Part shown: positions 7,801 to 38,209 of the stretch, one piece after another | Position numbering within the stretch: the stretch's first letter is position 1 | How the letters are laid out: each line of letters opens with the position of its first letter | Source: Bugula neritina | Taxonomy: Eukaryota > Animalia > Bryozoa | Length of the DNA: 64,000 bases | Reading direction: 5' to 3' | NCBI GenBank assembly: GCA_964035545.1 | Contig: OZ037766.1 | Location: 32,788,773-32,852,772, forward strand | Translations under genes and position numbers: made by a program | Notes under the pieces: model-generated | The model's input: only the letters and a program-made list of their open reading frames with translations | What the model was told of the DNA's origin: nothing | Database searches by the model: none

Positions 7801-10610
7801 TAGTATATAGTATACTGTATACATACATATTATATAGTATACTGTATACATATATATTATATAGTATACTGTATACATATACAGTATATAGAGTAGACTG
7901 CATAATAAAGAGGTAAGTACATATAATAGATAAGTAAGTATATATATATAGCAAAGGCTAACCTAGAATATATGGCCACAAGCCGCACACCGATTGGCTA
8001 AGAACTACTCACTGATGTAAACTGGATGTTGACTGGCTCATCAAAGTGAATGTTCTTAGCAAATTTCTCCATCTCTAGTCTGTGTTCCTGAGTGCCCATT
8101 TGACAAACTTGGTTGAAAGTATGGGTACCCCTAGCGAGATGGAATTTATACTCAGCACAAGCTAATCCCTGATGGAACTATAATCAACCTTACTACCAGG
8201 TTTGATCTAATAGACATTATCGGAGAAGATTGAAGAGGAGAAGTTTGAAGAAACGGAATAGTTAAAAACTTCTGTAAGCAAACAACTCTGTGTACTAGAG
8301 AAAGAAAGATTGAAAGTATAGTCGCTGTTACTGGGAGTAGGTTTGTAGGGTTAATGTAGACGGTGTAGCTAGGTGCTGAGTAGACAACATGCAGCTGTGA
8401 AACAAGGTTTACAGGGCAGTTAGTCTGAGTATTTATTAGCTAGTCTGAGAAACAGCAGTGCAGGTAAAGGTCACAGTTGTACCTAGCAGGTCAGGTCAAG
8501 TAAATGAAGTATCCAGATATATGCAGCTGTGCTATCAAGTACAGGCGTACTTAAAGAGGAAGTACCAATATGAATGTATAAACATTGACGCAACAGACAT
8601 CACAAAGCACTAACAAATAATCTCAACATAAAATATAATAAATAAAACACAGACTTTCAATATCTAATGCTCCGAACACACAACACATCAACTAAAGAGA
8701 CATTATATAACACAACTAGTCTAAACTAAAGACAACAATGCTATGTTCTCTCTGGTGATCATGTGTAATCCAGACTTGCAGCTTTCCTTGCTATGCATGC
8801 AAGTGAATGTTTCCTAAGACATGCTTGTTTTATACACACTACCTCACAGTAAAGAGAAAATAACTCTAATTCATATGCTGTATACCTTACCTAGCCAACC
8901 TGCATATAGCTACAGCCTGCAAGCAATAGACTTGGCATTATACATGATACAGAGTAAATGTTGACTACCATATTAAATGATGTCCAAACACTAAACGCAG
9001 TGTGTAACTGAAACCCAGTGCGTTGTAAGCAATGCGAGAGCTGCACTTACGGCTTAGCAGTGTCTCCCATTATGATAACAGAGGTGAGTTCCGGCGCCCT
9101 GTAATACATATAGAGTACCGTATAGAGCAGAGTATTAGCCCTGTAATACATATAGAGTACTGTATAGAGCAGAGTATTAGCCCTGTAATACATATAGAGT
9201 ACTGTATAGAGCAGAGTATTAGCCCTGTAATACATATAGCGTACTGTATAGAGCAGAGTATTAGCCCTGTAATACAGATAGAGTACAGTATAGAGCAGAG
9301 TATTAGCCCTGTAATACATATAGCGTACTGTATAGAGCAGAGTATTAGCCCTGTAATACATATAGCGTACTGTATAGAGCAGAGTATTAGCCCTGGTAGA
9401 TACACACTACTAACATTACTGTAATGGCAACACTGGGAGTTGTTTACTCTAGCTGACTAGCATGGATATAGAGAGGACAACTCAAGAAATTAACAATTAA
9501 CAGCTAAGATAATATAGTATAATTACAGCGTTATACATAATATTGTTCACTAGTGCTTATATATAAGCTGTATAGAGTTTATCAGAAGTTCTACAATGTA
9601 TTCTTCATCATTATATTCTGAGGCCTATACCAGTCACCCCTACCGCAAGGATCTATAAAACTACAGCTAACCTGTGGCACTGTAGACGGCCAGGAGGGCA
9701 TCTGGAAAGTTCTGGAAACAACTCAAACATCATCTCATAGTAGTCTTGAGTCTTAAAAGATTCAGCCATAATCATGGCTTTCATTCCAACCTTCTGGATG
9801 GCGTATTCCAGCTCTTGTACTCTGTACGCTGGGTTCACATTTACCTGCATACACAGTAAAAAGGTCTATTTTTACCTGCATACAGAGCAGTAGAGTCTAC
9901 ATTTACCTGCATACACAGTAAAACGGTCTACTTTTACCTGCATACAGAGCAGTAGAGTCTATATTTACCTGCATGCACAGTAGAAGGGTCTGCATTTACC
10001 TGCATACACAGTAGTGGAGTCTACATTTACCTGCATACACAGTAAAATGGTCTACATTTACATTTTGAGTTATAAATATTATTGAAATTAAAGAGCTGTT
10101 GAGCTTACCATAATGAGACCAATGTGTGCAGTGGCAATCTGAGTAAGAACCCATTCAGCTCTGTTGGGACTCCAGATACCGACCCGGTCTCCCGGCTTAA
10201 GTCCTAAGGCTAATAGCCCGGCAGCCAAATCATCCATCTGTACAGAAAGTATATATTGTATAAAGTAGGTGGAGAGAGATTTCTCTTATGAGACCCTTTA
10301 GTGGGACACATGCCGTTACACTATATCATCATCCTCTATGATGCCTAAGTAAGGTACTCAGTTACTAACACAAGCTAACCATATCACCAGTGACAGTAAA
10401 AAGTGATGAAATATCTGACCTTGGACTTGAACTGCTGGTAGGTCAGTCTCACTTTATCTCGCGAGAAAACAATCATGTCTCTATCAGGTGTTGCCTCCAC
10501 CTGTTTATTGAATAGTTCACCGATTGTAGCCCCACTGAGGGTGTGGTCACTGGGAGAACTGGCATAACTAAGTTTGACGGAATATCGGCAAACTGAAGAG
10601 GACAGATTCC
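4881..10610 (-). CDS. ACSF2: Medium-chain acyl-CoA ligase ACSF2 (AMP-binding), about 14 exons
   Basis: Spliced motifs: [25 protein letters not shown]|VNVNPAY; NIQFTS|[19 protein letters not shown]; [14 protein letters not shown]; GIMAGSPCP; AYGSTETSP; [15 protein letters not shown]; [20 protein letters not shown]; [10 protein letters not shown]; [12 protein letters not shown]. Stop TAG at 4881-4883. The start codon is uncertain and may be split (AT|G) with an exon near 10709-10736. Confidence 0.92.
6543..6625. repeat. About 22-bp tandem repeat (TAAAACACTGAAGGGGAGGGGG), about 4 copies, in an ACSF2 intron
   Basis: Direct inspection. Confidence 0.85.
7330..7590. repeat. Degenerate (ACT/ACC/ACA)n trinucleotide microsatellite in an ACSF2 intron
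   Basis: Direct inspection; it explains the poly-V, poly-T and poly-S pseudo-ORFs. Confidence 0.95.
7720..7950. repeat. TA/TAC-rich low-complexity intronic repeat
   Basis: Repeated tatagtatactgtatacata units. Confidence 0.8.
9097..9395 (-). repeat. 42-bp minisatellite (7 units, 8 acceptor copies) spanning an ACSF2 3' splice site
   Basis: ccctg recurs at 9097, 9139, 9181 ... 9391. On the minus strand each unit reads TATTACAG|GGC (the 9391 copy reads CTACCAG|GGC). Confidence 0.95.
9841..10062 (-). repeat. 31-bp minisatellite (7 copies) spanning an ACSF2 3' splice site
   Basis: ttacctgcat recurs at 9841, 9872, 9903, 9934, 9965, 9996 and 10027; the minus strand reads ATGCAG|GTAAA. Confidence 0.92.
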
Positions 10611-15500: not shown

Positions 15501-18500
15501 ATGGCTTATCAGCCTGCGGATGATGATGAAGCTGTAGAAGAGCTTGAAGAGCAGAACCCTGTTCCTTTTAATCAGTTTGTAAGTTACAACCAAACACCAT
15601 GCTCATCAGTGCAAAGCAAAAAGTAGTAAACTGCTCGCTCTATACAATATAATATAATAATAGTATAACTGAGTATTCATCTAAATATTCATTTGGTTTT
15701 AGCATATTTTGCTAGCTACTAATATTCTGAAAATTAAGCTCCTTAGCCTTCTTATTTTGGAGTCTTAATAATTCATTCATTTTGATGGATATAATAGGAT
15801 TCCAATATGTGTTCATTTAAATTGTAAGTTATGTTTTCATATTCTTGTACAGAATTCAAACATATGCATACATAATTGTATTCTTTTCACATTCTCAAGT
15901 AGCTAAATAACTAACTCAATGATTCCAACAGCGGTTGAGTTCATGAGTTAGAGGGATATTGCTCATCTGTTACTGAAATGAATATATTACTCCCATTTTG
16001 GGCTTTGAGTTCATCAAATAATACTGCAAGAAAGCAGTTTGATTCAAGCTGTAGTAATGAAATATAGTATTTAATGCTAGTATTTCAGTCTGGTGATGAA
16101 ATCAGCCATGCTTTGTGGGGTTCTCATTTGTTCAAATATTATATTGTCACTTTAGCTAGCCGTACAACATGGACAAGCTACTGTCAGTTTTGGAGATATT
16201 GATAAAGAGCATGAGGTGAAGCTTTCCTGCTATGTTGGTCTGTTTCTATACTGACATGTTATATAAATGTATCGTCTGTATTTGTCTTCTTTCGTGAGAT
16301 TTGTAACTGCTTGGAGAAAATAATAGTTTATTTTTTAGAATTCGAACCAAAACTAAATTTTATACCTGAGTGTGTTTATTTGGCAACAATTTTGCGCCAA
16401 CATTTTAACAAATATTTGACAGTAAAACTTTTACTTCACTTTTGATTGTAAACTTCTATTCACTAAATGTTCATGGTCAACTGTTAGTGAAAATTAGTAT
16501 TTAGTAGCTGTAAGTTAACAAGTACATTTTAAAAACTTAGTCCTCACTTATCTGCTAGTTTTTCATGTTGAAATAACGTTTTTTTAAGATTTTGATTGAG
16601 GTTTCCACATGTTGCTGGTGATTCAAGTTTTAACATTATACTATTGACTGGTAGATAAGGGGGGTTCCCCCTCAGTTGGATGGTGTTGTGGACGATGCAG
16701 TAGAGCTCATTAGACGAGTAAAAAGAGGTGAAGTAGATGTCGGCTTGCATACTCTCTATGAACACATTGAAGTGGATCTCAGGTTGAGAACGGTTAGTTT
16801 GATATGTTTTGGGTCTCATTCCTCACTGCTGAGTTAGTTCTCTGTAACGTACTCTACCTTTCATGTTGACCTCTGACCTTGACAAGTCTGCTGTTCACTC
16901 TATAAATAGCATTCTAACTTATCTATTTGGGAATAACACAAAACATTTTATATTTAACGTGTTTCTCCACTCTTTCTGTTTTAGCCTACCGACACTTTAC
17001 CTTTGGAAGATTCAGGACCAAATGGACCATTTGCAATTTTAGAAAGACTATTTTTAGATGTGTTTTATTACTATCAGTTTGAGTTAGAAGGGTATATCAC
17101 AGAAGAGGAGGCAAACAACCAGATATTCAGCATATTAAACCAGTATTGTACGAAGGTTAAAGACATCTCTGAAGGCTGCCTAGTGGCTGACTTGGAACTC
17201 AAAGATGACCACCAGTTGAGTCACCTCGTTTCAAATTTAAATCTCATTTCCCGCCAAATACATGAAGCGCTTTTTAAAAAGGGAAAAATTAATTCTCTAG
17301 TTGAAAGGAGAGACATTTCAGATGATGTAAAGGAAGGAGTGAAGAAGCTGTTTGATAAAATGTGGGCCAAACTGAAGCTGCGTGTAGTGTTACAGAAACA
17401 GGAAATGGTGGACTTTTTAAAGAACACAGCTGATAGTGTTTCCTTGACGATACTGATACAACACGCGTTGTTGCAACCTCCTAAACCAAAGAGTGTGGCT
17501 CACTTACTGGAGGACTTCAAAAACTTTGAGCACACATACAAAGAGCTGAGCAATCTGTTAGGGTCACCACTTGAGGTGGGTTACATTCATCACAAGTGAC
17601 TGAGTTTGTCTTTTATATACAATCACGGGCTTTCCATGTACCGATCTCAGATCGATCTTGCTGAGATCGATCTGGGAAATGTGCTCAGATCGATCGTTTT
17701 TCCATGAGAGTGTCAGATCGATCTCACGAAGTTGCCTCCTCTTAAGTGAAGGATACTTTAAAAGTATAATTTGTTCACCTATATGAGTGATTAAAACTAC
17801 TACTGTTGAAAACAAGATGGCCGTAGTCTAAAATTTAATTCCAGCTATAAACTTTACGCAGCAAAGCTTTCAGTGTATGGTAATTTGGCCAATTTAAAAT
17901 AATTAATTTTAATTTTTTAGTTTGACAGCTTATATAAAATTAATGGCTGTCTTGCAGATTATTAATAAACTTACAGGACTGTTGGGCTTAAATTTATAAA
18001 GAAAATAGCTAATGAAACTAAGTTTTAATAGTCATTTAAATTCAATTTAAATTCTCCCATTTTTTTTTACCTTCTACTGCATATGATTAAGTTTTCTTAA
18101 TCATCGTACTGAAAGTCAAAGTTTTGGCATCTGAAAACGTGGCTATCATAATTATTTAATACTTTGCTTAGTAATTATCAATAAGTTATCATTTTTATTA
18201 GCAGACAACATTGTAGCGCGCAGTCTTTTTCTACTTCTCAGATCGATCTGGCGTCTTTCCATGGTCTTATTGACATGAGATCGATCTGAGTTCGAGCTTC
18301 ACAGACCGACCAGCTCAGATCGACGGAGATCGATCTTTGGCGTCTTTCCATGGATCGATCTCGCTGAGATCGATCTGAGATCGGTACATGGAAAGCCGGT
18401 GAATATCAAAGCTTTAGTCAAACTGCTATACGGCTCATTGGTTCAGGTCAAAGGTCATTTCAGTTGACAAGGGAAGGCAATTAGTAATTGCTTATGCTTT

Positions 18501-21500
18501 ACTGAAACTTTTTAAATCTGCTTCTAGTAGTAAATTGTGACCTTAGTGTAGGCTCATGAAACTTAGGCTAAACTCGCAGTAAGGACATCGCTTCCTATAC
18601 CCCCCCTTCACTGTATAGCCATGGTATGTGAATGTTTCGTGTAATCTAACGTAACTTGTATATGATATGCATTACGTTGTTTTGTTTGTGTAGAAATCAG
18701 AAGAGAAATTTTCTGAAGACCCCTCCAAAGTTGCTGAAGATTTAAAGGCAGTAAGTTAACTCACTTAACAGTACTAGTAGTACTAGTAGCACTACACTAA
18801 CAGTACTAGTAGTATTAGTAGCACTACACTAACAGTACTAGTAGTACTAGTAGCACTACACTAACAGTACTAGTAGTATTAGTAACACTACACTAACAGT
18901 ACTAGTAGTATTAGTAACACTACACTAACAGTACTAGTAGTATTAGTAGCACTACACTAACAGTACTAGTAGTATTAGTAACACTACACTAACAGTACTA
19001 GTAGTATTAGTAGCACTACACTAACAGTACTAGTAGTATTAGTAGCACTACACTAACAGTACTAGTAGTACTAGTAGCACTACACTAACAGTACTAGTAG
19101 TATTAGTAGCACTACACTAACAGTACTAGTAGTACTAGTAGCACTACACTAACAGTACTAGTAGTATTAGTAGCACTACACTAACAGTACTAGTAGTACT
19201 AGTAGCACTACACTAACAGTACTAGTAGTATTAGTAGCACTACACTAACAGTACTAGTAGTATTAGTAGCATTACACTAACAGTACTAGTAGTATTAGTA
19301 GCACTACACTAACAGCTAACTAACTCAATCATACACAGCCATGTAATATCCTTTTAGTTCCACATGCTAGTTAATATACCTGCTAGCCAGTTACCTCAGT
19401 AATATGAACACTGCTGTCAAACAGCACCTCTATGTTCATAGTGTTATGAGATGGGAGGAATACCCCAGCTTGTTGAGTGTGGCACAATTTCATCAGTGTG
19501 TAGTGACTCTTTTCTGCAGCTGGTTTTTTAATAGCTCACTTGTGCACCATGCTTGTTTGCTACAGCTGACTCTAGACACCGAGAAAGATGTTGCGAAGGC
19601 TTCTGGGAAAGATTTAGGAGAGAGTTTTAAAGAAAGTTCATCTATGACAGGCGCAAAGAGAAAGGTAAGTACCACACTGAAAGCAGAGTAAGTAACAGAG
19701 AAAGAAAAAGAAAGGTAAGTACCACACTGAAGGCAGAGTAAGTAACAGAGGAAGAAAGAGAAAGGTAAGTACCACACTGAAAGCAGAGTAAGTAACGCAG
19801 ACAGAGAGAGAGCTGATATAGTTTCCTGGTATATGTTTCCTGTTGTAGACATATAAAGGTCCTCTCAGTCCACCAGGTGCCAAGGCAGAACAGGTGAGTG
19901 AACTTTACCAACTATTGGATAGTTAGTTCCGTAACACTGTAGCTACAAAGTGAGTATTTATCACTGCTACTATGTGTTTGTTGCTTGTCACGGCTGTTTA
20001 ATGTTACACCACAGCGATCTGTTGCAACTAGGTTTCTGACAAATTTACTTCCACGATTCAGATAGAGTTGTTTGCATAATTTATCCAAGGTTATAGATAC
20101 AAATTTAAAAGTAATTTTTGGGGTTAAATATTTTCCAATGAATTGAATAATAGTCGTGGTTAGTAGCGAGGGACAAGTGGAAAACCTTCAACCAATCAAA
20201 AGTTAGCAGCAGTCAATGGTTTGATAATGTTGAGCGTTTGAGGTAGAACAGGCCACTGTGGTGTGAAATCAGATAGCTGTAGCAATAGTCTTTTAGCTAC
20301 AGTGTGAGCAGGGTATCTAGTTACTATGTTGATATATACAGTATATACTATTACTATGTTGATATATACAGTACATACTGTTGCTATATTGATATATACA
20401 GTACATACTGTCGCTATAGGCCGCTGACCCAGAGCTCAGTCAAACTGCCCTCCATATACCTTCCCTACTGAATTCTGTCACGGACAGGAAGTTGTTTGAC
20501 TTTTTCAAGCAGTTCGGTCCTCTCGTTGATGTCGTCCTTCCCTGGGACAGCTATACGGGCAGGAAAAGTAAGATCTATTAATAGATATAGATTATATTAG
20601 ATGAGTCCTGGTGTTTCCTAGTGTCGAACAATCTTGTTGGTTATTTGGTTGTTGTGTGGATATCTGCAATCAGCCGTATTTTACTGATGTGTTATGGGAA
20701 AGATTGATTTTCTGTTTGTATGTCTTGTAGGAGGTTTTGGACGAGTTCAGTTTGCCAAAACGGAGGATGCAAAAAGAGCTCTCGATAGCCAACACTCTTC
20801 TGGGAGCTTCTCTGAGATTAAACAATCAAAGGTAGATATAATTATCACACTTGTGTCTTTCTTCGTGATGTAGTGTATAGTGTATACTGTGTAGTGTATA
20901 CTGTGCAGTGTGTACTGTGTAGTGTGTACTGTGTAGTGTGTACTGTGTAGTGTGTAGTGTATACTGTGTAGTGTATACTGTGCAGTGTGTACTGTGTAGT
21001 GTGTACTGTGCAGTGTGTACTGTGTAGTGTGTACTGTGTAGTGTATACTGTGTAGTGTGTACTGTGTAGTGTGTACTGTGTAGTGTGTACTGTGTAGTGT
21101 ATACTGTGTAGTGTGTACTGTGTAGTGTATACTGTGTAGTGTGTACTGTGTAGTGTATACTGGGTAGTGTATGTTATATATGTTTCATATAGAAAAGATA
21201 CGAATCAAGGTTAGAAAAAGAAAAGCTGTACATACGAGTGGAGAGTCCAGAGACCCGAAGTCTGGTACAGACTATCTGTGGGCCCGACAGTCTGGACAGT
21301 CTTACAGCTGCTAGTGCCTATTTCCCTGAGCTGTTTGGTGAGTCATTGCTCACGTGATACTCTTTCTATCATCCTCGGGATAACTTCCCTGCAATGGCCG
21401 CCCAAACCCCCATGCATACTTGTCCCTTCTTGTTCCTACCACTGAGGACTAGCTCAGAGGGACTGGGTAGCTGACAGGGTGTGGGCCAGTCTGTGTTCAC

Positions 21501-22027
21501 CCTGTAACTAGTTGTTAGTTTTTACATGTTTGTTTGACTTAGTTTACTTTTCATGGCCGTAATTTATAGAACTTTTATTTTGGAGATCAGAAAAACACTC
21601 CTATGGAAAGATAGTATAGTATAGCCTTTAGTCACAGTTTTAGGTCAAATTTATGAGATTTCAAAGAATTAGACAATATCTGATGTCAATATTACTCTTT
21701 ACTTGGTGGTATCTATGACGTCCACAGTTGCAGTTGCTAGTATGTAATATATTTATGACTTTAGTACCTATGACTTCTCCGGAGTCTGCACTCAAAGCCT
21801 TAGAAAGACTGCAAGCTGAGGGTGTTTATGTCTTGTTCGCTCGAGAAAGACAAGCAGGGTGGGTTTTTCAAAGTTTATTTATACTTTCACTGTTGCTGCT
21901 AATAAATTCTACAAATATCATGTTTATAATAATATAATCTACTCAGACACTTTTCCTTGATGTTGATATGCACTGGGTTAGTAACTTGGTACTCTTTTAC
22001 AGACCAAGGAGGCCACGAAGGTTCTAG
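15501..22027 (+). CDS. Uncharacterised N-terminal domain + 2 RRM protein, paralog A (exons 15501-15578, 16156-16215, 16655-16792, 16985-17575, 18694-18750, 19566-19664, 19849-19893, 20420-20567, 20731-20831, 21193-21337, 21765-21858, 22003-22027)
   Basis: All exons have GT-AG boundaries and join in phase. RRM1: LHIPSL...TDRKLFDFFKQFGPLVDVVLPWDSYTGRK|RGFGRVQFAKTEDAKRAL. Degenerate RRM2: KLYIRV...SPESALKALERLQ. Exon-by-exon homology with the gene at 24058-28713. Confidence 0.85.
17624..18401. mobile_element. Non-autonomous TIR element (MITE), CMC/EnSpm-Chapaev-like, in an intron of paralog A
   Basis: TIRs CACGGGCTTTCCATGTACCGATCTCAGATCGATCT / AGATCGATCTGAGATCGGTACATGGAAAGCCGGTG; CAC..GTG ends; 3-bp TSD AAT on both sides; multiple subterminal AGATCGATCT motifs. 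Confidence 0.9.
18766..19315. repeat. 32-bp minisatellite (TAACAGTACTAGTAGTATTAGTAGCACTACAC), about 17 copies
   Basis: Direct inspection; begins 15 nt after the donor at 18751. Confidence 0.95.
19657..19796 (+). repeat. 50-bp repeat (3 copies) duplicating the 5' splice site GAAAG|GTAAGT
   Basis: Donor GT at 19665, 19715 and 19765. Confidence 0.9.
20868..21172. repeat. About 14-bp repeat (GTAGTGTGTACTGT)n in an intron
   Basis: Direct inspection. Confidence 0.92.
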
Positions 22028-22226
22028 ACTGACGTATCTCAGAGAAGGTTCTAGACTAAAGTATCTCAGAGAAGGTTCTAGACTCTGTCCCTCTTCAAAG
22101 TATCTCAGAGAAAGTTCTAGTCTCTGTCTCTCTTCAAAGTTTCTCAGAGAAGGTTCTAGTCTCTGTCCCTCTTCAAAGTTTCTCAGAGAAGGTTCTAGTC
22201 TCTGTCCCTCTTCAAAGTATCTCTAA
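22017..22226 (+). repeat. 27/39-bp tandem repeat beginning across the stop codon of paralog A (GAAGGTTCTAG x6)
   Basis: Units CTCAGAGAAGGTTCTAGTCTCTGTCCCTCTTCAAAGTAT; the first TAG (22025-22027) is the stop of the phase-2 last exon. Confidence 0.85.
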
Positions 22227-24057
22227 GATTCACCGTTTCTTGTCCTTTTAGTCATCTCATGAAATCATATCTTCTCTCCAGAGAATTTAGTTGCAGACCA
22301 GATAGATATAATACAGTATGTCATTTACTATATTATGTACTATATAACATCTGTCTTATAATACCTACATGTATATAGTATGTATTTTATTATATATACT
22401 GTGTATTGTAATATCCATTATATATGATATTATTGTTTATACAATGTAGTACATTTATAAAAACATATTTACTTGCAACAATTGCTCAGAGAATCAAAAT
22501 CATAGGAGCTTTTATCTTTTACTCTTCATTCGCCTTTCACTCTAGCGTCCATCTTGTTTTTTATATTATTTTATTATGATTTGTTTTAGCCACTAATCAG
22601 CTTGCATATGCAATTCCATTACCTGCATAGTTTCTATTCTTTATAGACTGTAAGGTTTATGCAGATCACCATAACCCTTACAGTCTAACTAATACAATGA
22701 AATGAATTTTTAATTTGTATTTATAATATTTTCTATAAAACATGTATTTTATTCAATGTGTATTTTGTGTTTAAACTATTGTCTTCTCTATAAGAAAATG
22801 TTTAAAGCATTTGATGGTACGTTTCAGCAGCAAAATTTAAAATTTTCTGCCCCTCTTCAGGAGCTGTCTACAGTAGTTAGTGTATGCATTTATCATGTTT
22901 ATGTGATTGCCATAATATGTCCTATCAGTTTTATATAGCTTTTATTGATTTTTCAAAAATTTGAAAAATTAGAATTCTGGAAATAGATTTCACAGCCCTG
23001 TATCACAGTCTCACAGCTACAGAAAAGTTAATATTCAATAGAAATGTTTGTTTACAATAACAAACATATAAGTTTTATTGAAACTAAGCTTTTATTTATC
23101 CTTTTTATGTGATAACATAGTATGCAATGTAGTAAAAATGCATTTTCTGTGGCTGTATTTACTGATGAATGTTTTCTCACAGCTAGCTGCCCTATGTTGC
23201 AAGAATATTGCGATTGTTTGAGCTGATTGCAAGTCGTCATCTTTAAATAATCTATCTTCTGTCATTCATTTGTTCACTGGTTACTGCTGTTCACTGCAGC
23301 TTTTTATATAACTATCATTTGTTATTGTTCAAATTAATTCATCTATAAACAACAGGAATATTTTTAAACCCTTGATCTTGTAATTATTGCCAAGCAGATT
23401 AACAGCAGTTCACTCTGCAAAGCATACAAACTACCCTGGTATGTTCCAGGACATATGGATACTTCATGTGTTGAAATATTGATATACCTGTACCATGTTG
23501 CAAGTGTCAAGAACTTAGTTTATGAGTTATTCAGTGTCTTAATAAATATTAATTTCACAGCCATAGCATCCCATATTTGGAGTAAAAACGTCCACAGCAG
23601 CATCAGGTTTGAGGGTTCTGCATCTAAGCTATCCACAAATCCTTTGAGCTGACAACGTTACAGCAGCAAAGGAAAGGATGTGAGCAAGTTTATTTGATTT
23701 GGCTCATGAATAATATTAAACAGTTAAGTAAAAAAAGATTCACTAAGAACTAAATACTATAGAAACTATGACAAGCAATATAGCATATACCTGCACGAGT
23801 TAATAAAACTGGACAAGCTGAGCGTGTAGGGTGACATTTCACCTTCAACTTATAAATATATATAATCAAAGAAACATATCATAAAAGTATCAAAACAATA
23901 TAGAGTTAATGATTGCTGTTCAAAAAGGTTTGACCTTCTATTCGGTATAGAAAGGATGTAGAAGTTTACAAGCTGATAATCCTACTGATTACCTCAGCTC
24001 TTCACTTAGTCAGCACACTATCGACTATTACTTATAAATAGAACTATTCCGTTTTCT

Positions 24058-27000
24058 TTAGGGAGACAGGCTAGCTTGGGCTCCGAGACTGGGTCTAAAA
24101 TATTCAACTGAGTGTTAATCAATAAAATGTGGTACTAATTCTATAGAACATACACATGTACAGTGGTGGTAGTAGTAGTACTAGTAGTAGCGGTAGTAGT
24201 AGTCGTAGTGGTAGTACTAGTCGTAGTGGTAGTACTAGTAGTAGTGGTAGTAGTAGTCGTAGTGGTAGTACTAGTCGTAGTGGTAGTACTAGTAGTAGTG
24301 GTAGTTTTAGTAGTAGTAGTGGTAGTAGTAGTCGTAGTGGTAGTACTAGTCGTAGTGGTAGTACTAGTAGTAGTAGCGGTAGTATTAGTAGTAGTAGCGG
24401 TAGTACTAGTAGTAGTAGCGGTAGTACTAGTAGTAGTAGTGGTAGTACTAGTAGTAGTAGCGGTAGTATTAGTAGTACCAGTGGTAGTAGTAGTAGTAGT
24501 AGCGGTAGTACTAGTAGTAGTAGTAGTACTAGTAGTGGTGGTAGACGGAAAGACTGGTTATGGTAGGAAACCAACAGTACTGAGTAATTTATACAGTCAC
24601 TACTAATAAATAGTTCAACAAACCGCTTTGGCCGAGCCATTAAAGCATAAATATCCATCCCTTGCAGCAGTGCTAATGCGTTATAAGCATCATCTTGGCT
24701 CAAGAAATCAAGGAAGCCTGCAAAACAAAGTCAGTCTTTCAAATACAAAAAAATTACCTATACAAACATTCATTCAATTGCTGTTCCCATTAGAAGTGCA
24801 AGTTTAACAGTGAAATTCTCTAATACATGTTCAAAAGTTAACTTGTCCGAGAGTTTAGTTGGTGAGAAAAAAAAACTTAGCATCTACTGACTATAACTGT
24901 GTGATACTGTAGACACAAGATAGTTAATTAGTCCACAACTATAGCTGGCAAGGTTTAGTAACTATTAGTATAACACCATACAAGAAGTAATAATCTGCAT
25001 GTGCTATCCCATATCTAGACTACAACATAAAGTAGCCATTACTAACGCACCAAATGACTTGTCCGGGAAGGCCAGAATGTCCGTGACATTAGCAAAGTTC
25101 TGACTCAGGTCTCGCAGGTACTCCTTTGTAATGCCCTCAGACTGTATGTATACCTTCGTCTCACTCAGTCTATGTTGGCTGCTTTCCTGCACACAAATCA
25201 AATCATCTGACAAGAGAAATTTCGTATCAGTTCTACCCAACTTTTATAACATTGGTATGCAGACAGGGCAGAAGGTGAAGTATAGAAACATATCAGCCAT
25301 CCAATATGGTTACTCACGTTGGCCATTCTAGAGTTGTGGGGATTCTGTAGATTCGCTTGTCTAGCATCTTCCTTATGAAGAAACCGCACAAACCCAAACC
25401 CTGAGAACATAAGGCAAGTTGTTAGAATCAATCAGAATATAATTGGCAGAATAACAAATTCAATACCATTCAATAATACCACGCAAATTGCAAGAAAATT
25501 TTATGTTGGAATTAGAAAGACTGTGAGCTCTAGCTAAATCAAAGCTGTGTTCACTGAAGAAATAGTATAATTTGCAACTGCATGAGGGTAAACTCAATGA
25601 TTTCTAGGATACTATAAAGTTGTGTAGCTCTTTGGCGTTCTATTTCAAAGAGGCCAGCAAACATGAGAGTAGATAAATGTGCACCTTTGTTTTTGGCCAG
25701 GCTGTCCTTGTTGATGTGAACATTCAGCAGAGTTCCGTATCCTTTGAAGTCGTCAAACAACTTCCTTTCAGTCATGTGACCACCCAGTGCGGAAATGTAG
25801 AGGACAGTTTCACTGAGAGATTTACCAAATAGCTGTGATGAAGACACGTCCAACTGCAAAGTATAATATAACTGAAGACAATACCTGTAAGCAGCCATGA
25901 GTAACAAACTACAATATTGTCAGAGTGTGTACAACCAGTTACTAAGTCACGTGATACTTACAGACTCAAATTCTACGCTCAAGACACTTGTGGGAGTCTA
26001 CAACAAGATGAGACACTCTAATAAAGAGAATAATAAGGTTCTCTGATACACATACAGATAATGGAAGAGGATTTCACAAGCTGATCATAAGGAACATTAG
26101 CTAAGAGTCTGCTGAGAATATAACACCAGGAAGTGGAGCGGTAAGGCTGTATAACTACTGTCTCAAACACACCGTCATTCCACCACCAACAGCGCCCTCT
26201 TCAATCCCCTCCTTCTTAGCTCCGCCCTCTTCAGTCCCCTCCTTCTTGGCTCCTCCCTCTTCGGTCCTCTCCTTCTTGACTCCGCCTCCTTCAGCCCTAC
26301 CTTTCTTGGCTCCACCTCCTTCTTCTAAACTTTCCATCCGAGTTGGTGCTGAGGGCTACAGTGTACAGCACACAGTGCATAATCTACACTAATACACAGC
26401 ATGTAGTGTGATTTACGCAGTCTGTAGCATGTACCTAGTAGAATCTGTATCTATTATATACATAGAATAACTAAGTAGAACCAGTATATATTATATATAT
26501 TATATATAGAATAACTAAGTAGAACAAACCTCTTTAAGCAACTCCAGCAGTTCATGAAGCTCTTTGTTAGTGTACTGAAAGTCCTGAAACCCATCCATGA
26601 ACCTTCTCTTACTATCCCTAAGACGGTGGTGAGTAGAAGGTTCCGGAGCTCTATGACATACCATTATGATTAGAGCAATGCCATCCGCTCTCTTGTGTAG
26701 AAAGTCTAACATCTCTTTCCTCTTTATGAAAGTAATTATCTTCAGGTTCTCCACAATTCTGGTCAACAAACTAACAACATCATTCCTGATTTGCCTTTCC
26801 AACCCACGATTACCAACAATTGACTTCAAGTCAATCTTATCAAAAACCACCTCATCAATTTGACAGGAGATGAAACCTAGAATTGAAACCAGTTCACCAA
26901 GCATCAAATCATCTTCTAGTTTGAGTCTGGCGACAAGGCAACCGGCAATAAGTTCCTTGACCTTCGTGCAATACTGATTCAGTATGTTGAAAATCTCATT

Positions 27001-28713
27001 ATCTCTTTCTCTAATGTGAGCAAATTCTGTGAGGGTAGAATTGACATGATGCAATACCCCGTGGCACAGGTTTCCTATGATCTGGGTGACATCTTCGGGC
27101 AGGGCAACAAGTCTACCGACCTGCGAAACAAAATCAATAATTCAATAACTATCAATATTTATTGAATCAGCTCAACTGAACTTTAAAAAGAATGTTTACA
27201 GAGACAAGGAATAACAAAACTTGAGTCAATTTGTTAGCACACAATGGGAGACTAACCCTTGCCCCACACTGAAAGAAGTTGACGTGTTCCTTTATATCAT
27301 CTAGAGTTGCATCTACTTTTCCCAGTACAACTTGTCTCAGGAGTTCAACTGCTCTGTCCACAACGTCATCTAATTGGGGAGGAACTCCCTTTATCTACCA
27401 GTGATCATGTCAGATAAATTAGCAGAGTTGTGACAAGAAGAGTTGTCTGTTTAGAAATCTAAACACTTCTTCTTCTTGGACTCAAATTCCCATTCAATAA
27501 ATACATAATTGAATAATTCAACAATTCTTTACTCAAGCAAAAATGAATTAAGTACATGCTGACAGTTTTCTAGTATGGAACTAAGCTCCAGTAATCGAAA
27601 GAAAAAAGGAACTACTGAGGTGACTAATAGAGAAATCGTTAACATGAATGTATACATTTGCATGACTATTACATTCCCACCAACCTTATTATACTATGAC
27701 TATTACATCCCCACCTACCTTATTCTACTATGACTATTACATCTCCACCTACCTTATTCTACTATGACTATTATATTCCCACCTACCTTATTCTACTATG
27801 CAATACTTCAGGAGTGCTTTTTTCTAATTTCAAATTTTTATTGAATCCATTATTAAAATATCTGAATGCTATTAATACTTTGTAAATGAATTATGAATAA
27901 ATGTCTTTTCATTAGTTTGCCTAAGAAAAAGTTTTACAGCATACCAAATTTAGTCTCTTCACTGTTAACTAAGGTTGTATTAGTTTAACCGAAGCAAACC
28001 TTTTAAACTAATCAGTGTAAAAATGTGTTAAACGAAGACTCTCAACCAAGACTGTTAATTTGACTAGATACTGTGAACTCACTTCAGAAGTTGGTTTATC
28101 AATATCTCCATAGCAAAGAACAGGTTGTCTGTCTGATTGCACAGCTATCTGTAACACATGCAGCTGCTCCATAAATCAATAAGAAGTAAAAACTACAGTC
28201 ACTAGATAAAACTGCTTTACCAACAGCGAATATAAATTCATTTTTAGTTGACTTTGCACTCTATTTTCAAGTTCAAGTGCTTGTCACAAACTGGTTGTCT
28301 AATTATTACAGTGAATAATGCTCAACACACTACAAAATTAGCTTTCCGCTGTTTGATATTTAAAAATGAGAAAATATTTTAGTCTTTGCACACATAGCCA
28401 AAACTACACTAGTAACTAAAAACTAGTAACACAAGACTAGTAACTAGTGAATTGGCACTAATGAGACGTGACCACTAAATTGTGACTAGCAACTTGTGAC
28501 TAGCAACTAAGGACTGGTAACTAAGGACTAGTAACTAAGGACTAGTAAGTAAGGACTAGTAACTAAGGCTTAGTGAGTAAAGACTAGTAACTAAGGACTA
28601 GTAACTAAGGACTAATAACTAAGGACTAGTAAGTAAGGCTTAGTGAGTAAGGATTAGTAACTTGCGTGTGAAGGTGATTCAATCTCATACTCTTCTTCTG
28701 GTTGGCTAGCCAT
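24058..28713 (-). CDS. Uncharacterised N-terminal domain + 2 RRM protein, paralog B (approx. exons 28713-28666, 28148-28083, 27395-27258, 27120-26531, 26356-26173, 25853-25685, 25400-25317, 25240-25048, 24717-24624, 24094-24058)
   Basis: Shares with paralog A: AVQ...GDIDK, I.GVPPQLD.VVD.AVEL, N.IF.ILNQYCTKVK....GCLVA.L.L.DD, EM.DFL...AD and F..F..T.KEL..LL. RRM1: VLYISALGGHMTERKLFDDFKGYGTLLNVHINKDSLAKNK|GFGFVRFLHKEDARQA. RRM2: KVYIQ...FPDKSF|GFLDFLSQDDAYNAL. Confidence 0.85.
24160..24545. repeat. Degenerate (AGT/GGT/ACT/CGT)n microsatellite in the last intron of paralog B
   Basis: Direct inspection. Confidence 0.95.
26190..26325 (-). repeat. 30-bp coding repeat (EEGGAKKEGT-like, about 4.5 copies) in the paralog B linker
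   Basis: ORF 26155..26337 translation; lies within a spliced exon. Confidence 0.8.
27662..27800. repeat. About 34-bp minisatellite (ATGACTATTACATTCCCACCTACCTTATTCTACT), 4 copies
   Basis: Direct inspection. Confidence 0.9.
28480..28662. repeat. 14-bp repeat (ACTAAGGACTAGTA)n abutting the GC donor of paralog B intron 1
   Basis: Direct inspection. Confidence 0.88.
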
Positions 28714-29840
28714 TTAACCTACACATCTAGAAGCCAATCAAATATATGGTTTCTGTTGCTCCTAAAATTCAGTTGACCAAAACAATATAATAACTAAATA
28801 ATGCATTCCATAATATCTATAGGCTTCAGAGTATTTTATTTGTATTTTAAAATCACAAAACTAAAAACACTTTGATTTTTGAAGTTTTGAATAACATATC
28901 TATATGAATGACTTTCAATTTTAAACTCCTACTTTTCTTACAAGAAATGAAATAAGACGCTTTGGTAATTTACTCATTGTCCTAATCATTTATAAAAAAG
29001 TCATCACTTTAATTTTTAAATACTAGCATTTCTGATGAATCATTGCATTAAGAAGTGGTTATTTATTCATTAACTTCATCATAATCATAATGATGATGGT
29101 TGAACGTTCTAGCAGCTTATAGTTTTAGTAAACTTGTATCAATATTTCGTCTCAAAATAAAACCAAAATTCTTTACTTTTTGGGTAGTTTTAATAAATAG
29201 TGTGATCAATTTGAATTTAAAAGAATAAACTCAAACATAAATTTTTAATTTCAGTCTGAGTCTTACAGTTACATTTTTGCATTTCATCCTTACCTTACTC
29301 TTATCTTAACACTTATAAACTAAAATTAAAAGCAAGCCATAAATTATTTATTCTATTGAACCACCCAACACTCCAACAGTAAATGTAATATCAATATCAT
29401 ACTCCATAGGCATAGTAATTTGAAATATCATAGTTTAAGTTACAATTATACAAATAGTAATACTAATAATTATAGTTATAGTTATAATTATATTTATACT
29501 TTTATACTCTTATACTCATACTCATACTGGTAGTATTTTTTCTTTAAAAAAATTGCGACACTTTAGGTTGATAAATACTTATACTATATGGAAATACAAG
29601 ATAAATATATTTACTTTTAGTTATAACCATTACAATTTACTGTTATCCTTATAATATCAGTTATAGTTATTTGCTTTCGCATTGATTCACTTTGAGTTCA
29701 AACTCAAAGGGTTAAAGGTACAAATTTACTTACTCTGGATTAGTTGTTTGCAAACAGAAAAATCAAAGAAATGCAGAAAACGGTTACATTGTCATAAAGC
29801 TGGAATCCTTGTAATATCATAGTGAACTTTTGGAATAGAG

Positions 29841-29981
29841 CTATAAGCAGCTCCAAGTTGGGGGGTAAATAAGCGCAATAGTTTGGGTTCTTTAATTTAG
29901 AGTTCCATCATATTTGAAGCTCGAAATTCAAGAACTCCAAGCTATTACACTCATTCTCTCTCAACTTGGAGATGCTTATAG
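29841..29981. mobile_element. Small degenerate hairpin MITE-like element
   Basis: CTATAAGCAGCTCCAAGTTG ... CAACTTGGAGATGCTTATAG, with imperfect inverted symmetry through the whole element. A similar terminus (CAACTTGGAGCTGCTGATA) occurs at about 837-855. Confidence 0.6.
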
Positions 29982-30965
29982 AATCATGCATACTTTTGAA
30001 ATAAATGAATATAATCTTATATTGATAGACTCTCAGTCTCAGGTTTTGTACAGCAGCCAGTTACTTACGGTACGCTAGTGAAAACACGGAAATTATATTT
30101 AATGTTACTCAGAAAATTCCAAATCTTTGCCATTCTGGTTTAAGAGCTTGCCTAAGTAGCTTTTTCTAATGAAAATTATAAAACATGTCGTGTCAATGAC
30201 CGTGTTAATTTTATGATTGCAAGAGTTAGTTTTAACTTGAAGTTTTTGCTAAAACATTCAACAAATTGCTTTTCTGACTAAACTTAAACAGTTGACTCTT
30301 GAGGTGCAGCCAAATGTTCTGCTCATCATCAATCATTGAAACACAAAATTAGAATGACTATTTTTATAAAATAGAATTTTGCAGGAAACACATATTTAAA
30401 ACAGTTCTTTTCAAAAATAGTTTCAGTTATCTGCTTCATAAGACATTGTGATACATTGAACTCAAAAAGATTGAAACGTGAATGCTTTTCTAGGACTGAG
30501 TACTCTTTTATGTTATATGATTACCCCTAAATAACAAACTAATCATAAATTTAATATACATACTTTAAAAAACTGACAATTTTTAAAAAAAAGATTAAAA
30601 AGTTTTGACTATGCTTTTGCTAAATTTGACTTATGTCATATAGAAAAAATCATATTTAAATTACAAAAACCTGTACCTTATGATCAGCTAAATAAAAATC
30701 ACAGCTTAAGAATAAATAGATTTCTCCCAGAGCAAAATAACATCACACAGTGTGCAATATGTCAGTCTCCTAATGGTGATTAAAAATTGCTATACAAGTA
30801 GCTCATTATAAAAAATATTGCCACAATTCTAAACTGAAAATAAAGATACATTAAATCAGTATTGCCGACTGCTTAACCCTGAGTTTTTCATTTGATTACA
30901 ACTGCTGTACATATATCTATAGAGGATGAAACAGCTGAAATTTAAACTTTTTCTCTACAATTTTG

Positions 30966-32501
30966 TCATAATGATGATTTAGTTGAGACAATACTGGTCA
31001 ACCGCAGCCAACAAATCTTTTTAACTTCTGATACTCCGGTGTGTATTTCTTGATCTTGTTCATTATTTAACCTCTGGGCCAATCCTTTCAATATCGCATC
31101 TTTTTTATTTTCTCGAGCGCATATCACAAATGGGAAACCAAACTTATCTTTGTATCTAAAATCAAAGTAATGGTTTAATTTAATAGGAGTTAATTAGACA
31201 ATATCATGAGAAGATAACTTCATACAGTCATTACAGAGTAAACTGTTAGTAAAAAGATAAATAAATGTGCTTGCAAGAATTTCTACATTAGAAGATACCT
31301 AACATCTAATATCTATCTTAATTGTGATTCTTAAAATCATATGCGTAATTTGCACTCAAGCCAACAACGTTGAATATGATATAATCAAATGAGCAAGATT
31401 TCCATAAACAACTTTGTACATAAAATTATGTAACTTGATCGAAAATGAAAGGAAATACGGTTATACTTCTGCAAGACTATAGCCGTTTACTGACATCAAC
31501 AATCAAAGAAAAGGTAAAAAGAAATAGAATAACTCTCAATTATTATCTTCAGTATTGTTGTTAAGAGAAACCAAGGCAATGACACAAGTGTAAAAGTCTG
31601 TGATTCCCAGTGGGACACAGCACAATAACTTATTGCATAGAAAGTTTAATCATAATATCATGATAAGCATACGACTTACTTACTTATTCTAGGCATATAA
31701 AATGAAAGACTTATTAAAGGTCAAGTATTATTATTACGTTTATAAATGAACACGCCTAGCAACAAGAGCTGTATTAAAGTTACTACCGTGTGTTGAGAGA
31801 GTCCATTTGGGACTTTTCACCAGGGGTCAGGTCATCAAGGCCAGCTGCCTTCTGCTCCAACTTTGACTCATCGGTTAGCTGATCTGCTACCGCAAGCCGT
31901 CCAGCAAGATCTGGATGACACCTCAGTATTCCAGCTTTCCCTGCGGTGATCAGCAAATTAGCTATAAACTAGTTAATACAAGCTGCAGGTGCAAGATAAA
32001 TTGAAACTTCTGAAACACAAATTAAAACTCTTTAGCACAAGATACATGTAAAACATCAACAAATGACTAAGTGATGTTTTTTCCCTGCGTGTGACTGGCA
32101 AGTTTGGCATTGTAGTTATCTACACTAAAGTTGGTCAGTCAAAAATAAATCACATACTGTCAAAACAGAGCCAAATCGAACACCTCTCTGGCAAATACAT
32201 GAAATCTTATGAAATCATTACAACTAGAAACAAAATATTCACAGTTTAGGAGTGAATTAGCAATGGAATCATAACATATAGTTTATGCATATAAAACAGT
32301 GTGTAAAATGAACACAAAAGTGTCACCTGCTAATGGAAGCTGGTCAACAAATGTTTCTATAGATTTTTGTAAACTTTCTAGATCTTGAAATGGAAGGTTT
32401 GACCATACAGCAGCAGCAACAAGGGGGCTCATCTCAACCACATTTCCAAATATTTTAATGAATTCTTCAAATCCCAGCGCATTTACCTCAGATATAAGCA
32501 T
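30966..32501 (-). CDS. URAD: OHCU decarboxylase (uric acid degradation), exons 32501-32327, 31940-31787, 31155-30966
   Basis: MLISEVNALGFEEFIKIFGNVVEMSP...|GKAGILRCHPDLAGRL...LTDESKLEQKAAGL...LNTR|YKDKFGFPFVICARENKKDAIL...EVKKICWLRL; phases are consistent. Confidence 0.95.
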
Positions 32502-33503
32502 CTTTTTGACTTTATTCCTATCAGATAAACTAAAAGAACCTGCAAAGTTAAAGTAATACAAACATAACTTCAACCAGCAAGTTACAGTCATCAAAACTAT
32601 AAATATTATTATATTCATATTGTTACAATAGCTGCTACAATAATTGTAATATGGGCATCATTTTTACATCGACATTGACTTTTAACTCTTTTATGTATTG
32701 AATATTATAATTATTAGTATATATTTCATTTGATATTCAGACACTAGGCTGTTGCATCACTATTAAAAGCTTACAAAATATTACACTTACAGTACAGATT
32801 AGCGGGCGTGGCGCAGTTTATACCGAAACTATTTTGAAGCATCCTACTTGCATTTTCACTACGGTGAAATAATAATATACTTATAGTTATAGTATTGGCC
32901 AACTCCTAGCGTGAACAACAATTGCAAATTGTGAGTCAGACTCAGTCATTGTCATTAATCTTCCAGTTCAATTTTTGTTGAACTCAATGATAGATAAGTA
33001 ATACATCAACTTTAATTAGTCACACCGATTCAATTTCATGAGCTTGAAGTTGAAGTCATTGTGATTGTTATAGCCATAACAAGACTAGTGATTCCGGTTT
33101 CGATAATGGAGAACGCCAAATTTTAAACTTTCAAACAATTTAACGTAATTTCAAAATTAGCTCGCTTATAGTAATACTAGTAGAGGCAGGGGTGTGCTCA
33201 TTAATTTTTACTCAAACCCTAGTCTATTGTGAGTCAGTAATAAACACAGAATTTAGTGCCCATCGAAGAGATTCAACCTGAACTTCCGACTGACTATCAG
33301 TATCACTCCATTATAAATTTTTAGTGCCGCCTAGTTGATAGTATATATTTTTAGTTAGTAAACGCAGTAGTACTATTAGTAATACTGTATTAATAGTAGA
33401 TGTAATACTAATATATATTTTTTTTTTTATAACGATAATCACTTATCATATTGATATTGACAACTACCAGTAGTTGCATAAAAGTAATTTAATAAATAAA
33501 GGA

Positions 33504-34448
33504 ATGCCATCTAAGAGCAAAGATAAGTGCGCCTATTGCAACCTGAAGGCTGATGAGCAAAAATGTCATGTGATGATACGCTGTGATTGCTGTGAGGCAT
33601 GGTATCACAGCCAATGTCAGGACCTCACCAAATATGAGGCAAATCTCATCTCTAGCGCAGAAGGGAAAGGAGTAAGATGGTTCTGCACTAAATGCATACC
33701 GGAACTGGTAATTAATGTAGACTCTCAAGACCAAACTAAAGCTAAAACTTCAATTACCGAACTAAAAGAAAAGCTGGAAGAAATGAATCTGTTAACAATG
33801 AACAAACTTAACGATATTGACCGAGCTGTTAAAGGCATGCAACTCACGTATGCTGATACACTAAAGAGTAACAATGAGAACATAAAGTCCCTAGAAGATT
33901 AATGTTCCAAGCTTGTTGAGCAAAGTACGGTGCAAATGAATAAGGCTGTTGAAGTAAACATAAATGCTGAGAAGTTGATGCAGAAAAGTAATGAAATAAG
34001 TGAGGCAGATGCCAGAAAATGTAATGCTATTCTATATGGTGTGCCGGAGGGAGATGGAATACCGGTATTAGAGCAGGTCGAAAAATTCATGAGAGAAGAA
34101 AGATTCAAAAACCTTGACAAACCTCATGCAGCCTTAAGACTCGGAAAAAAGAGTGCGGAAACCGCTAGACCCATAAAAGTTGTCTTTGAGACTATCCAAT
34201 CTAAATGGGCCTTCATAAAGAGGGTGAACTCTTGGGGACTTAAAGGTGACAAAGTCTTCTGCAAGCTAGATGCCAGCAAGGAAATCCGCAACCAAGAGTT
34301 CGCCCTCCGTGAGTGTGTGCGTGGACTGAAAAGTGACAACCCTGGATCTGCATACAGAATAAGGAATCTGCAAATTGAATGTCAGCAACCCTCGGGGGAA
34401 TGGAAGCGTCTGACGCCGGCATTAAACAGTGTAGTGAGAGCCCACTAG
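33504..34448 (+). pseudogene. LINE ORF1 (PHD finger, coiled coil, RRM-like NAILYGVPE) with one in-frame TAA
   Basis: CAYC..CDCCEAWYHSQC..WFCTKC. ORFs 33474..33902 and 33930..34448 share a frame and are separated only by TAA at 33900-33902. Confidence 0.85.
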
Positions 34449-37165: not shown

Positions 37166-38209
37166 CTTACCTATCAATTTTCTTTTTAAATATCACTATC
37201 TAAATTGAATAATATCAGCGGTAATGCGGAAGCACTAAAAAAAAAAAACGGAACACTCACTGTCACACACATGAGGCGCTCTACTAACGTCATATGATGG
37301 TCAAGAGCGTTCTACCTCATCAGAGGTAATCAGAGGTAATAAGTATGAGTATTTAGTATTACTATTACTATTAGTATTAGTACTCATACTGATACTGAGC
37401 GCAAAGCTAAATCCAATCACAATGAATATGATTCACTCCCTCCCACTCACACTCACTCATCACTATCGGTGAGAGTTTCAATTAATAATTATATTCATAT
37501 TCATATTTGATATTGCCATTGCGTCTGAAAATGTAATTTCAGCTTTAATATCGACATTTTATTCTAATTATTTAATTTTAAAATCGTAAATATGGTCATG
37601 CATGATGATAAGGATTGTCATTATGATTATGATTATGATATTCATACTGAATTTGATTATCAACATTTACTTACACTTTTAGTTTTAGCAACGTTTATAT
37701 TATTAATATTATAATTATACTCCTCCTATTTCGCTAGCAGGATTATTTCATTTTTGGGTTTCCCAATTGCGGATATTAAGCCTGGGTTTATTAGAAATTT
37801 TTTTTTCTACTCATTGCTAAGAGAGAAAGAAGACCTCCATTTACAACTTTAAGAAATTGAAAAATACTCACAGTCTCTAACTTTTACACTTTTACAAATC
37901 CGGAAATGCATTGGTGTAAAACAACGAAAGCTGCTTGAAACAGCACCGAGTTTGTGGTTACTGAGTGCATTGGTTCTGTTTCGTATACGTATGCATATTT
38001 AAATACTGTACTTGATTACCCCCAACATGGTGCTACTTCTATCAATATTCTAATCTAGCTGTCAGGCTTGAACATTGACTTGTGAAAACTAAAATAGCTA
38101 ATAATCAGTTAGTTGTTCTATTTCAACCTTTGTATTCACAATGCTATTTTAATATAAAAAGACACTTGAAATTTTAATATACCTTATCATGTTTTACGTA
38201 GAAATTATT

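Follow-up and report, generated by a model that had tools for sequence, protein, structure and literature searches.

Two tail-to-tail sister genes, here called A and B, lie within a 64,000-nucleotide stretch of DNA recorded as Bugula neritina (contig OZ037766.1; C2:32788773-32852772 of a 216-Mb assembly), and they probably encode a pair of RNA-binding proteins that is restricted to one lineage and carries an undescribed N-terminal domain. The whole stretch, hereafter the window, is intron-rich animal DNA with 32-40% GC. Gene A is on the plus strand and runs from an ATG at 15501 to a stop codon at 22027 through 12 exons, with GT-AG borders at every intron. Gene B is on the minus strand and runs from an ATG at 28713 to a stop codon at 24058 through 11 exons, with GT-AG introns except for the first, which is GC-AG. 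In the scripted check of the exon models, each gene has a coding sequence of 1581 nucleotides (nt) for a protein of 526 amino acids (aa). The genes are convergent, their stop codons lying about 2 kb apart, and they have a common domain order, in which an N-terminal region of ~290 aa is followed by a charged linker and two classical RRMs.

Gene structure and paralogy

A first-pass annotation of the window, made from its letters alone, had described a tail-to-tail paralog pair with matching exon order and intron phases, and both the tblastn searches and the exon models bear this out. When stop-to-stop pieces were searched, fragments of A (15.3-22.3 kb, plus strand) matched the minus strand at 23.9-28.9 kb, which is gene B. 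A exon 4 (E 2e-31, 36% identity over 181 aa), A exon 3 (E 5e-12, 59% identity in a 39-aa block), the GDIDK exon and the RNP1 exon of A all find counterparts in B. Three exons have equal lengths in the two genes (exon 3, 138 nt; exon 4, 591 nt; second RRM2 exon, 94 nt), the intron phase is identical at every homologous junction, and in both genes each of the two RRMs is interrupted by a phase-1 intron just 5' of the RNP1 glycine. Between the paralogs, identity is 56% in exon 3, 38% in exon 4, ~41% in RRM1 and 22-36% in RRM2.

The coordinates first given for both genes were also correct. The sole addition is a 57-nt linker exon of A at 18694-18750, which was found only through the RNA-like joints described in the next section. 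The motifs listed for the N-terminal region (GDIDK, GVPPQLD.VVD.AVEL, ILNQYCTKVK...GCLVA and EM.DFL) are all present, and the order of a charged linker and then tandem RRMs holds.

The exon models were derived from the sequence, and their splice sites, phases and frames were verified by script. In the list below, P0010 is the deposited B. neritina ortholog of B, P0007 is a homolog from Watersipora subatra, L014 and L015 are loci of the deposited B. neritina assembly, and X1 is a set of RNA-like contigs.

15501..15578, +, A exon 1, acidic start (MAYQP...): ATG and GTAAGT donor; the MA.QP plus acidic motif is also in B exon 1 and P0007
16156..16215, +, A exon 2, GDIDK: AG/GT, phase 0; X1 joint 16215/16655; paralog match
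16655..16792, +, A exon 3, 138 nt, GVPPQLD..VVD.AVEL helix: X1 contig 16653-16790 continuing at 16989; GTTAGT donor same as B; 56% to B
16985..17575, +, A exon 4, 591 nt, core of the N-terminal domain: 38% to B exon 4; X1 joint 17575/18694; without a Pfam family
18694..18750, +, A exon 5, 19-aa linker: X1 joint from 17573 to 18692, GT..AG; AG/GTAAGT, phase 0; kept in L015
19566..19664, +, A exon 6, charged linker: AG/GTAAGT; X1 depth; 81% to B. neritina L014
19849..19893, +, A exon 7, 15-aa linker micro-exon: AG/GTGAGT, phase 0; ortholog in L014
20420..20567, +, A exon 8, first half of RRM1, RNP2 LHIPSL: phase-1 donor same as B; 41% to B; X1 depth
20731..20831, +, A exon 9, second half of RRM1, RNP1 RGFGRVQF: weak Pfam RRM_1 on the exon alone; X1 joint 20831/21193
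21193..21337, +, A exon 10, first half of RRM2: X1 contig 21191-21337 joined to exon 9; phase-1 end same as B
21765..21858, +, A exon 11, 94 nt, second half of RRM2, degenerate RNP1: GTGGGT donor, phase 2; X1 joint from 21858; 100% aa identity to L014
22003..22027, +, A exon 12, basic tail PRRPRRF and stop: X1 joint from 21858 with 14 letters like 22003-22016; AG acceptor; frame closes at 1581 nt
28666..28713, -, B exon 1, MASQPEEE...: GCAAGT donor (GC-AG); exon (94% aa identity) and donor kept in B. neritina L014:10270-10327
28083..28148, -, B exon 2, GDIDK: AG/GTGAGT; residues 13-34 of P0010
27257..27394, -, B exon 3, 138 nt: AG/GTTAGT; paralog match, E 5e-12
26530..27120, -, B exon 4, 591 nt, core of the N-terminal domain: residues 80-278 of P0010, 88%, E 1e-110; AG/GTTTGT
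26173..26355, -, B linker exon with GGAKKEGTEE-like decapeptides: coding tandem repeat at 26193-26313, period 30 nt, 4 copies
25962..25997, -, B 12-aa linker micro-exon: AG/GTAAGT; TPTSVLSLAFES in P0010
25685..25853, -, B first half of RRM1, RNP2 LYISAL: 96% to B. neritina; weak Pfam RRM_1 on the exon alone, significant in P0010
25318..25400, -, B second half of RRM1, RNP1 KGFGFVRF spanning the phase-1 intron: splice signals, Pfam
25051..25186, -, B first half of RRM2, RNP2 VYIQS: 100% aa identity to B. neritina
24624..24717, -, B second half of RRM2, 94 nt, RNP1 KSFGFLDF spanning the intron: GTTTGT donor, phase 2; 100% aa identity to B. neritina
24058..24094, -, B last exon, PSLGAQASLSP and stop: same as the P0010 C-terminus; the preceding intron holds the 24162-24544 microsatellite

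Two features considered for the models were dropped. A donor of A exon 3 at 16771 was given up for 16792, as the X1 contig indicates. A hydrophobic C-terminal tail anchor (open reading frame of A to 21937, of B to 24119) was rejected, since both stretches are shown to be introns by the X1 joint at 21858 and by the C-terminal end of P0010.

Transcription and splicing of gene A

A word search of sequencing runs found no run recorded as RNA that contains the stretch. Two runs were used. X1 is labelled as metagenomic RNA-Seq from a 'symbiont metagenome' (guessed to be RNA; 7% of sampled words), and X2 is a DNA run (92%). Contigs of both were aligned at 85% likeness to positions 16100-22099 of the window, a range that lies downstream of A exon 1 and apart from the whole of B. 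The X1 contigs, which differ from the window by 5-10%, cover the exons of A, with zero depth in four intronic bins, and join these exons at 16215/16655 (GT..AG), ~16792/16985, 17575/18694 (GT..AG), 20831/21193 and 21858/~22003. None of the five exon-border joints occurs in the X2 DNA contigs, which are colinear with the genome in this range. Because the X1 joints match the modelled exon borders and are lacking in X2, we conclude that a close relative transcribes its ortholog of A and splices it in agreement with the model. The joints link the N-terminal exons of A onward into the linker, and the second exon of RRM1 to the first exon of RRM2; the contigs are short, and no unbroken X1 chain runs from A exon 4 to the RRM exons.

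RRM domains and selection

Searches and fold predictions used single window exons plus the database proteins P0010 and P0007 as queries. By sequence, both C-terminal domains belong to the RRM family. The Pfam RRM_1 model (PF00076, cut-off 20.7 bits) scores 67 bits over two stretches of P0010 and 50 bits on P0007; as an intron divides each RRM, single window exons reach only 14-15 bits. The solved chains nearest to the C-terminal half are those of PABP (yeast Pab1), HuD/HuR, Sxl, hnRNP A1, TDP-43 and Prp24 (E 1e-9 to 1e-24). The beta-sheet of an RRM binds single-stranded RNA through aromatic residues of RNP1 and RNP2. Gene B retains the RNP aromatics in both RRMs (LYISAL/KGFGFVRF in RRM1, VYIQS/KSFGFLDF in RRM2). 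Gene A has LHIPSL/RGFGRVQF in RRM1 and LYIRV with a degenerate RNP1 in RRM2, the motif being only partly present. The earlier description of one canonical and one degenerate RRM therefore suits A but not B.

The ratio of nonsynonymous to synonymous substitution rates (dN/dS) was estimated by the Nei-Gojobori method from summed per-exon counts against the B. neritina loci L014 and L015:

N-terminal domain: gene B 0.45, gene A 0.59
Linker: gene B 0.30, gene A 0.90
RRMs: gene B 0.09, gene A 0.46

Judged from these ratios, the N-terminal domain is fast for a folded domain, yet under purifying selection. In the RRMs, B is by the same measure the conservative copy and A is relaxed or changing. The label 'fast-evolving family' is thus apt in that the N-terminal domain evolves faster than the RRMs of B (0.45-0.59 vs 0.09), but not beyond that, dN/dS being <1 and the copies just two. 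Because the RRMs of B are constrained and those of A relaxed, the pattern suggests a divergence of function between the two genes, by sub- or neofunctionalisation.

The N-terminal domain

The N-terminal ~290 aa, which the first-pass annotation could assign to no named family, remain without one: across the window exons and homologs, nothing in Pfam matched at E<=1 apart from scattered noise below threshold, and the family profile found no match among PDB sequences (best E 0.07). Two AlphaFold2 models (m6bce6c12256a and m721c72a9b26b) predict an alpha/beta core with three strands. The first covers P0010 residues 1-300, from 10 sequences, with a mean confidence score (pLDDT) of 60.9; the second covers the core, residues 84-284, from 13 sequences, at 71.0, with the strands and flanking helices at ~80-95. 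The predicted order is a helix, a strand (CLVARL), two long helices, a strand, a short helix, a strand and two helices. Foldseek searches of the PDB with both models returned nothing below E 0.15, and the Atlas shape search gave no convincing match (TM<=0.35). Weak matches to histidine-kinase (HK) HAMP/DHp segments (CovS-like_HAMP, E 0.01 and 0.16, in Pfam; 4i5s, E 0.07, in PDB; HK chains, E ~0.7, with Foldseek) were rejected as chance, all lying below significance and spanning ~45 residues only.

We put forward, tentatively and with some reserve, that this region is a new domain and possibly a new fold, born within the bryozoans and coupled there to tandem RRMs; the proteins would then be phylum-restricted RNA regulators whose Bugula duplicates are diverging in function.

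Distribution and history of the family

A two-sequence exon-4 profile (A1), searched with HMMER against 1.84 billion cluster representatives at E<=1e-3, found 9 proteins, and the only named sources among them are Bugula neritina and Watersipora subatra. The other hits are exon-4-sized open reading frames from Logan runs and ENA metagenomes without a species name; two of the ENA records are labelled BRYA16, and sample SAMN08714533 traces to marine biofilm metagenomes. A ten-sequence profile added four further metagenome open reading frames and no named protein. Going by named sources, the family so far appears restricted to bryozoans, in line with the lineage restriction first proposed.

The ortholog of B is the 522-aa 'RRM domain-containing protein' of Bugula neritina (KAF6036900.1 / A0A7J7KE25, our P0010), with 75-100% aa identity per exon (89% in the N-terminal exons, 97% in the RRM exons). 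The only other full-length homolog is a 484-aa 'uncharacterized protein' of Watersipora subatra (XP_067944655.1, our P0007), whose gene spans a range of 139 kb. It shares the acidic MA.QP start, GDIDK, the PP.L(D/E)EVVD helix, the core, the linker and the two RRMs, and it ends just past RRM2. In a third species (L013), a PPEL exon lies upstream of exon 4. A literature search found no paper that mentions KAF6036900.1 or XP_067944655.1.

The deposited KAF6036900.1 begins with a different, upstream exon (MSELPKHRISFL); the L014 segments concerned are 10001-10039 and 10270-10327, the latter holding the conserved counterpart of B exon 1 and its GCAAGT donor. The N-terminus of the deposited entry is probably mis-annotated, and the MASQPEEE exon with its GC-AG intron appears the likelier start.

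In the deposited B. neritina assembly, the P0010 gene is preceded by an OHCU-decarboxylase gene and followed by a convergent RRM gene that is cut by the contig end. The flank upstream of B in the window (28978-38631) aligns to B. neritina contig VXIV02000649.1 at 79-86% identity, and it is there that the OHCU-decarboxylase gene lies. Because the P0010 gene has both the convergent RRM neighbour and this upstream synteny, the convergent pair is, by sequence comparison, conserved in B. neritina, where an intact ortholog of A is kept.

When the entire genome was searched in six frames, with P0010 and with a 13-sequence family profile, A and B were the only copies found; the copy-number check that the first-pass annotation had called for thus gives exactly two, and A and B are not an expanded family. 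A maximum-likelihood tree built on the core domain groups the A and B sequences of the two Bugula genomes in a single clade (support 95/95), with the other lineages outside. Gene B sits on a long stem, the branch of A is shorter, and the long branches make the deep placement unsure. Because A and B of the two genomes cluster to the exclusion of the other lineages, the tree places the duplication within the Bugula lineage and before the split of this genome from the deposited B. neritina assembly (dS ~0.1-0.15).

Alternative explanations

The N-terminal region had been likened to TRADD-N, which would make the proteins RNA-sensing adaptors of invertebrate death or immune signalling. TRADD-N (PF09034) is an RRM/ACT-like two-layer sandwich with a four-stranded antiparallel sheet, a beta-alpha-beta-beta-alpha-beta order and two kinked helices. 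It has a conserved motif of a tiny residue and Ser in the beta2-beta3 turn, the Ser being occasionally replaced by Cys, and it occurs together with Death-like or effector domains, frequently as part of lineage-specific expansions; in some oyster proteins its fusion partner is an RRM or a KH domain (Kaur et al. 2021, PMC8195603). These oyster fusions speak for the comparison, as does a near-invariant G-C of the family (G140-C141 of P0010), which echoes the tiny-residue-Ser/Cys motif. However, this dipeptide stands just before the first core strand and is modelled at a helix-to-strand turn, not in a beta-hairpin, and the models (pLDDT 61-71) have an alpha-beta-alpha-alpha-beta-alpha-beta-alpha-alpha topology with three strands instead of the four-stranded sandwich. 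Pfam TRADD_N gave zero hits at E<=1 on the window exons or P0004-P0010, and zero against the six-frame translation of the whole 216-Mb genome. In the Foldseek check on AlphaFold models that had been suggested, and likewise with VIA-align, no TRADD chain stands among the top rows for either model. Pfam detects no Death, DED or effector domain in the homologs, in which RRMs are the only other domains, and the two copies amount to no expansion. Nothing links A or B to death signalling, and we regard a TRADD-N-like domain here as extremely improbable. It is also very unlikely that the region is a highly diverged CATCHR helical bundle of the kind found in exocyst, GARP, Dsl1 and COG, which would connect RNA with the tethering of vesicles or membranes. 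Language-model look-alikes in the Atlas point weakly to CATCHR tethering subunits and serve as a lead only; CATCHR domains (such as Sec15_C, Vps53_C, ZW10_C2 and Syndetin_C) were matched neither by profile nor by fold.

The RRM half raises a different alternative, namely that A and B are the bryozoan ortholog of a widespread tandem-RRM family (SART3/Prp24-, TDP-43- or hnRNP-like) whose N-terminus has diverged past recognition. Taken together, the two RRMs do align to the tandem RRMs of Prp24 and TDP-43 (E 1e-6 to 1e-7), and P0007 touches on the Prp24-type model RRM_occluded as well as on RRM_3. Those scores, however, are no better than the ones for single RRMs of ELAV, Sxl or hnRNP A1, the full-length P0007 search finds only P0007 itself at E<=1e-3, and Pfam shows no HAT/TPR, TDP-43 N-terminal domain or other family signature, so that we consider this account unlikely. 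Decay of A into a pseudogene, with B as the only functional copy, is rather more doubtful still. It would explain the degenerate RNP motifs of A and a dN/dS above that of B in every region (RRMs 0.46 vs 0.09; A linker 0.90), but all 12 of the 12 A exons are open with canonical GT-AG borders and a frame that closes, A is spliced in the RNA-like contigs of a relative, B. neritina keeps an intact ortholog, dN/dS is <1, and A has the shorter N-terminal-domain branch in the tree.

Several points weigh against the interpretation of A and B as a lineage-restricted RNA-binding pair with a new domain. The junctions of B are supported by the annotated B. neritina ortholog and by splice signals, not by reads. 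X1 is only guessed to be RNA, comes from a relative ~5-10% diverged and is in contig form. The statement 'bryozoans only' has two named species behind it, together with contigs from unnamed runs and metagenomes. The structural models have middling confidence scores (pLDDT 61 and 71, from 10-13 sequences), which makes 'no known fold' a weak conclusion. What we say of RNA binding, of how the N-terminal domain acts and of a biological process is inferred.

A possible mode of action

Under the interpretation as an RNA-binding sister pair, A and B would stem from a gene that was duplicated locally and in inverted orientation within the Bugula lineage, each predicted to encode an RNA-binding protein of ~526 aa whose tandem RRMs would contact RNA in single-stranded form. 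Between the RRMs and the ~290-aa N-terminal alpha/beta domain runs a flexible, low-complexity charged linker, and this domain would most plausibly be a partner-binding, self-association or regulatory module that directs the RRMs. It would in that case give the RRMs their specific role, and the proteins would act as post-transcriptional regulators or adaptors. Since the duplication, B has kept canonical RNP residues under strong constraint; in A, several of the RNP aromatics are gone and evolution is faster.

Repeats within and beside the genes

The introns of both genes hold repeats. Triplet tracts of the ACT/AGT type occur at 28498-28662 (14 nt x 12), directly after B exon 1; at 18766-19315 (32 nt x 17), in A intron 5; and at 24162-24544 (18-21 nt x 19), in the last intron of B, where the tract yields spurious poly-Leu/Ser/Val open reading frames of 136-194 aa on both strands. 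At 19655-19811, a 50-nt unit that includes the splice donor of A exon 6 (AAAGgtaagtacc...) is present in 3.1 copies just after that exon and creates extra donor-like sites. The segment 17600-18500 of A intron 4 is a very high-copy repeat, with a summed X2 contig depth of 1e4-1e5 vs ~150 for single-copy DNA. Its GATC-rich inverted segments and many rearranged joints in X1 and X2 suggest an element like a miniature inverted-repeat transposable element (MITE). A intron 9 contains a 14-nt minisatellite x22 (20869-21170), and a 39-nt repeat x4.3 (22058-22223) lies just past the A stop codon, in the presumed 3' untranslated region.

Significance and comparison with known systems

The analysis provides corrected gene models for a conserved RNA-binding protein pair in the poorly annotated phylum Bryozoa, defines an N-terminal domain that is absent from Pfam and from the solved-structure search, and removes a tempting but unsupported tie to death-domain signalling. 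Should the domain turn out to have a new fold and a definite partner, it would represent a lineage-specific way of directing RRMs; otherwise, the pair would be another taxon-restricted uncharacterised family, of a kind common in under-sampled phyla. KAF6036900.1 and XP_067944655.1 had already been deposited, and both were unstudied database entries.

TRADD-N proteins, which are adaptors in marine invertebrates and sometimes carry RRM or KH domains, resemble A and B in having an alpha+beta domain; theirs has a conserved small-residue-Ser/Cys dipeptide, and the present family has a near-invariant G-C. A and B differ from them in their predicted strand and helix order and lack the profile match, the structural hit, a Death-superfamily partner and the expansion. 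With PABP, ELAV/Hu, Sex-lethal, hnRNP A1, TDP-43 and Prp24, the two proteins share a consecutive RRM_1 pair with recognisable RNP2 and RNP1. Unlike these classical tandem-RRM proteins, they carry the ~290-aa N-terminal domain, have a phase-1 intron that splits each RRM just before the RNP1 glycine, and score generically, without specific orthology. A further parallel is G3BP, in which an NTF2-like interaction domain and an acidic linker precede a C-terminal RRM. A and B have no NTF2 match in Pfam, have two RRMs and lack an RGG region, yet their general design, with an N-terminal domain joined through a charged linker to C-terminal RNA-binding modules, is the same as that of G3BP, by analogy only.

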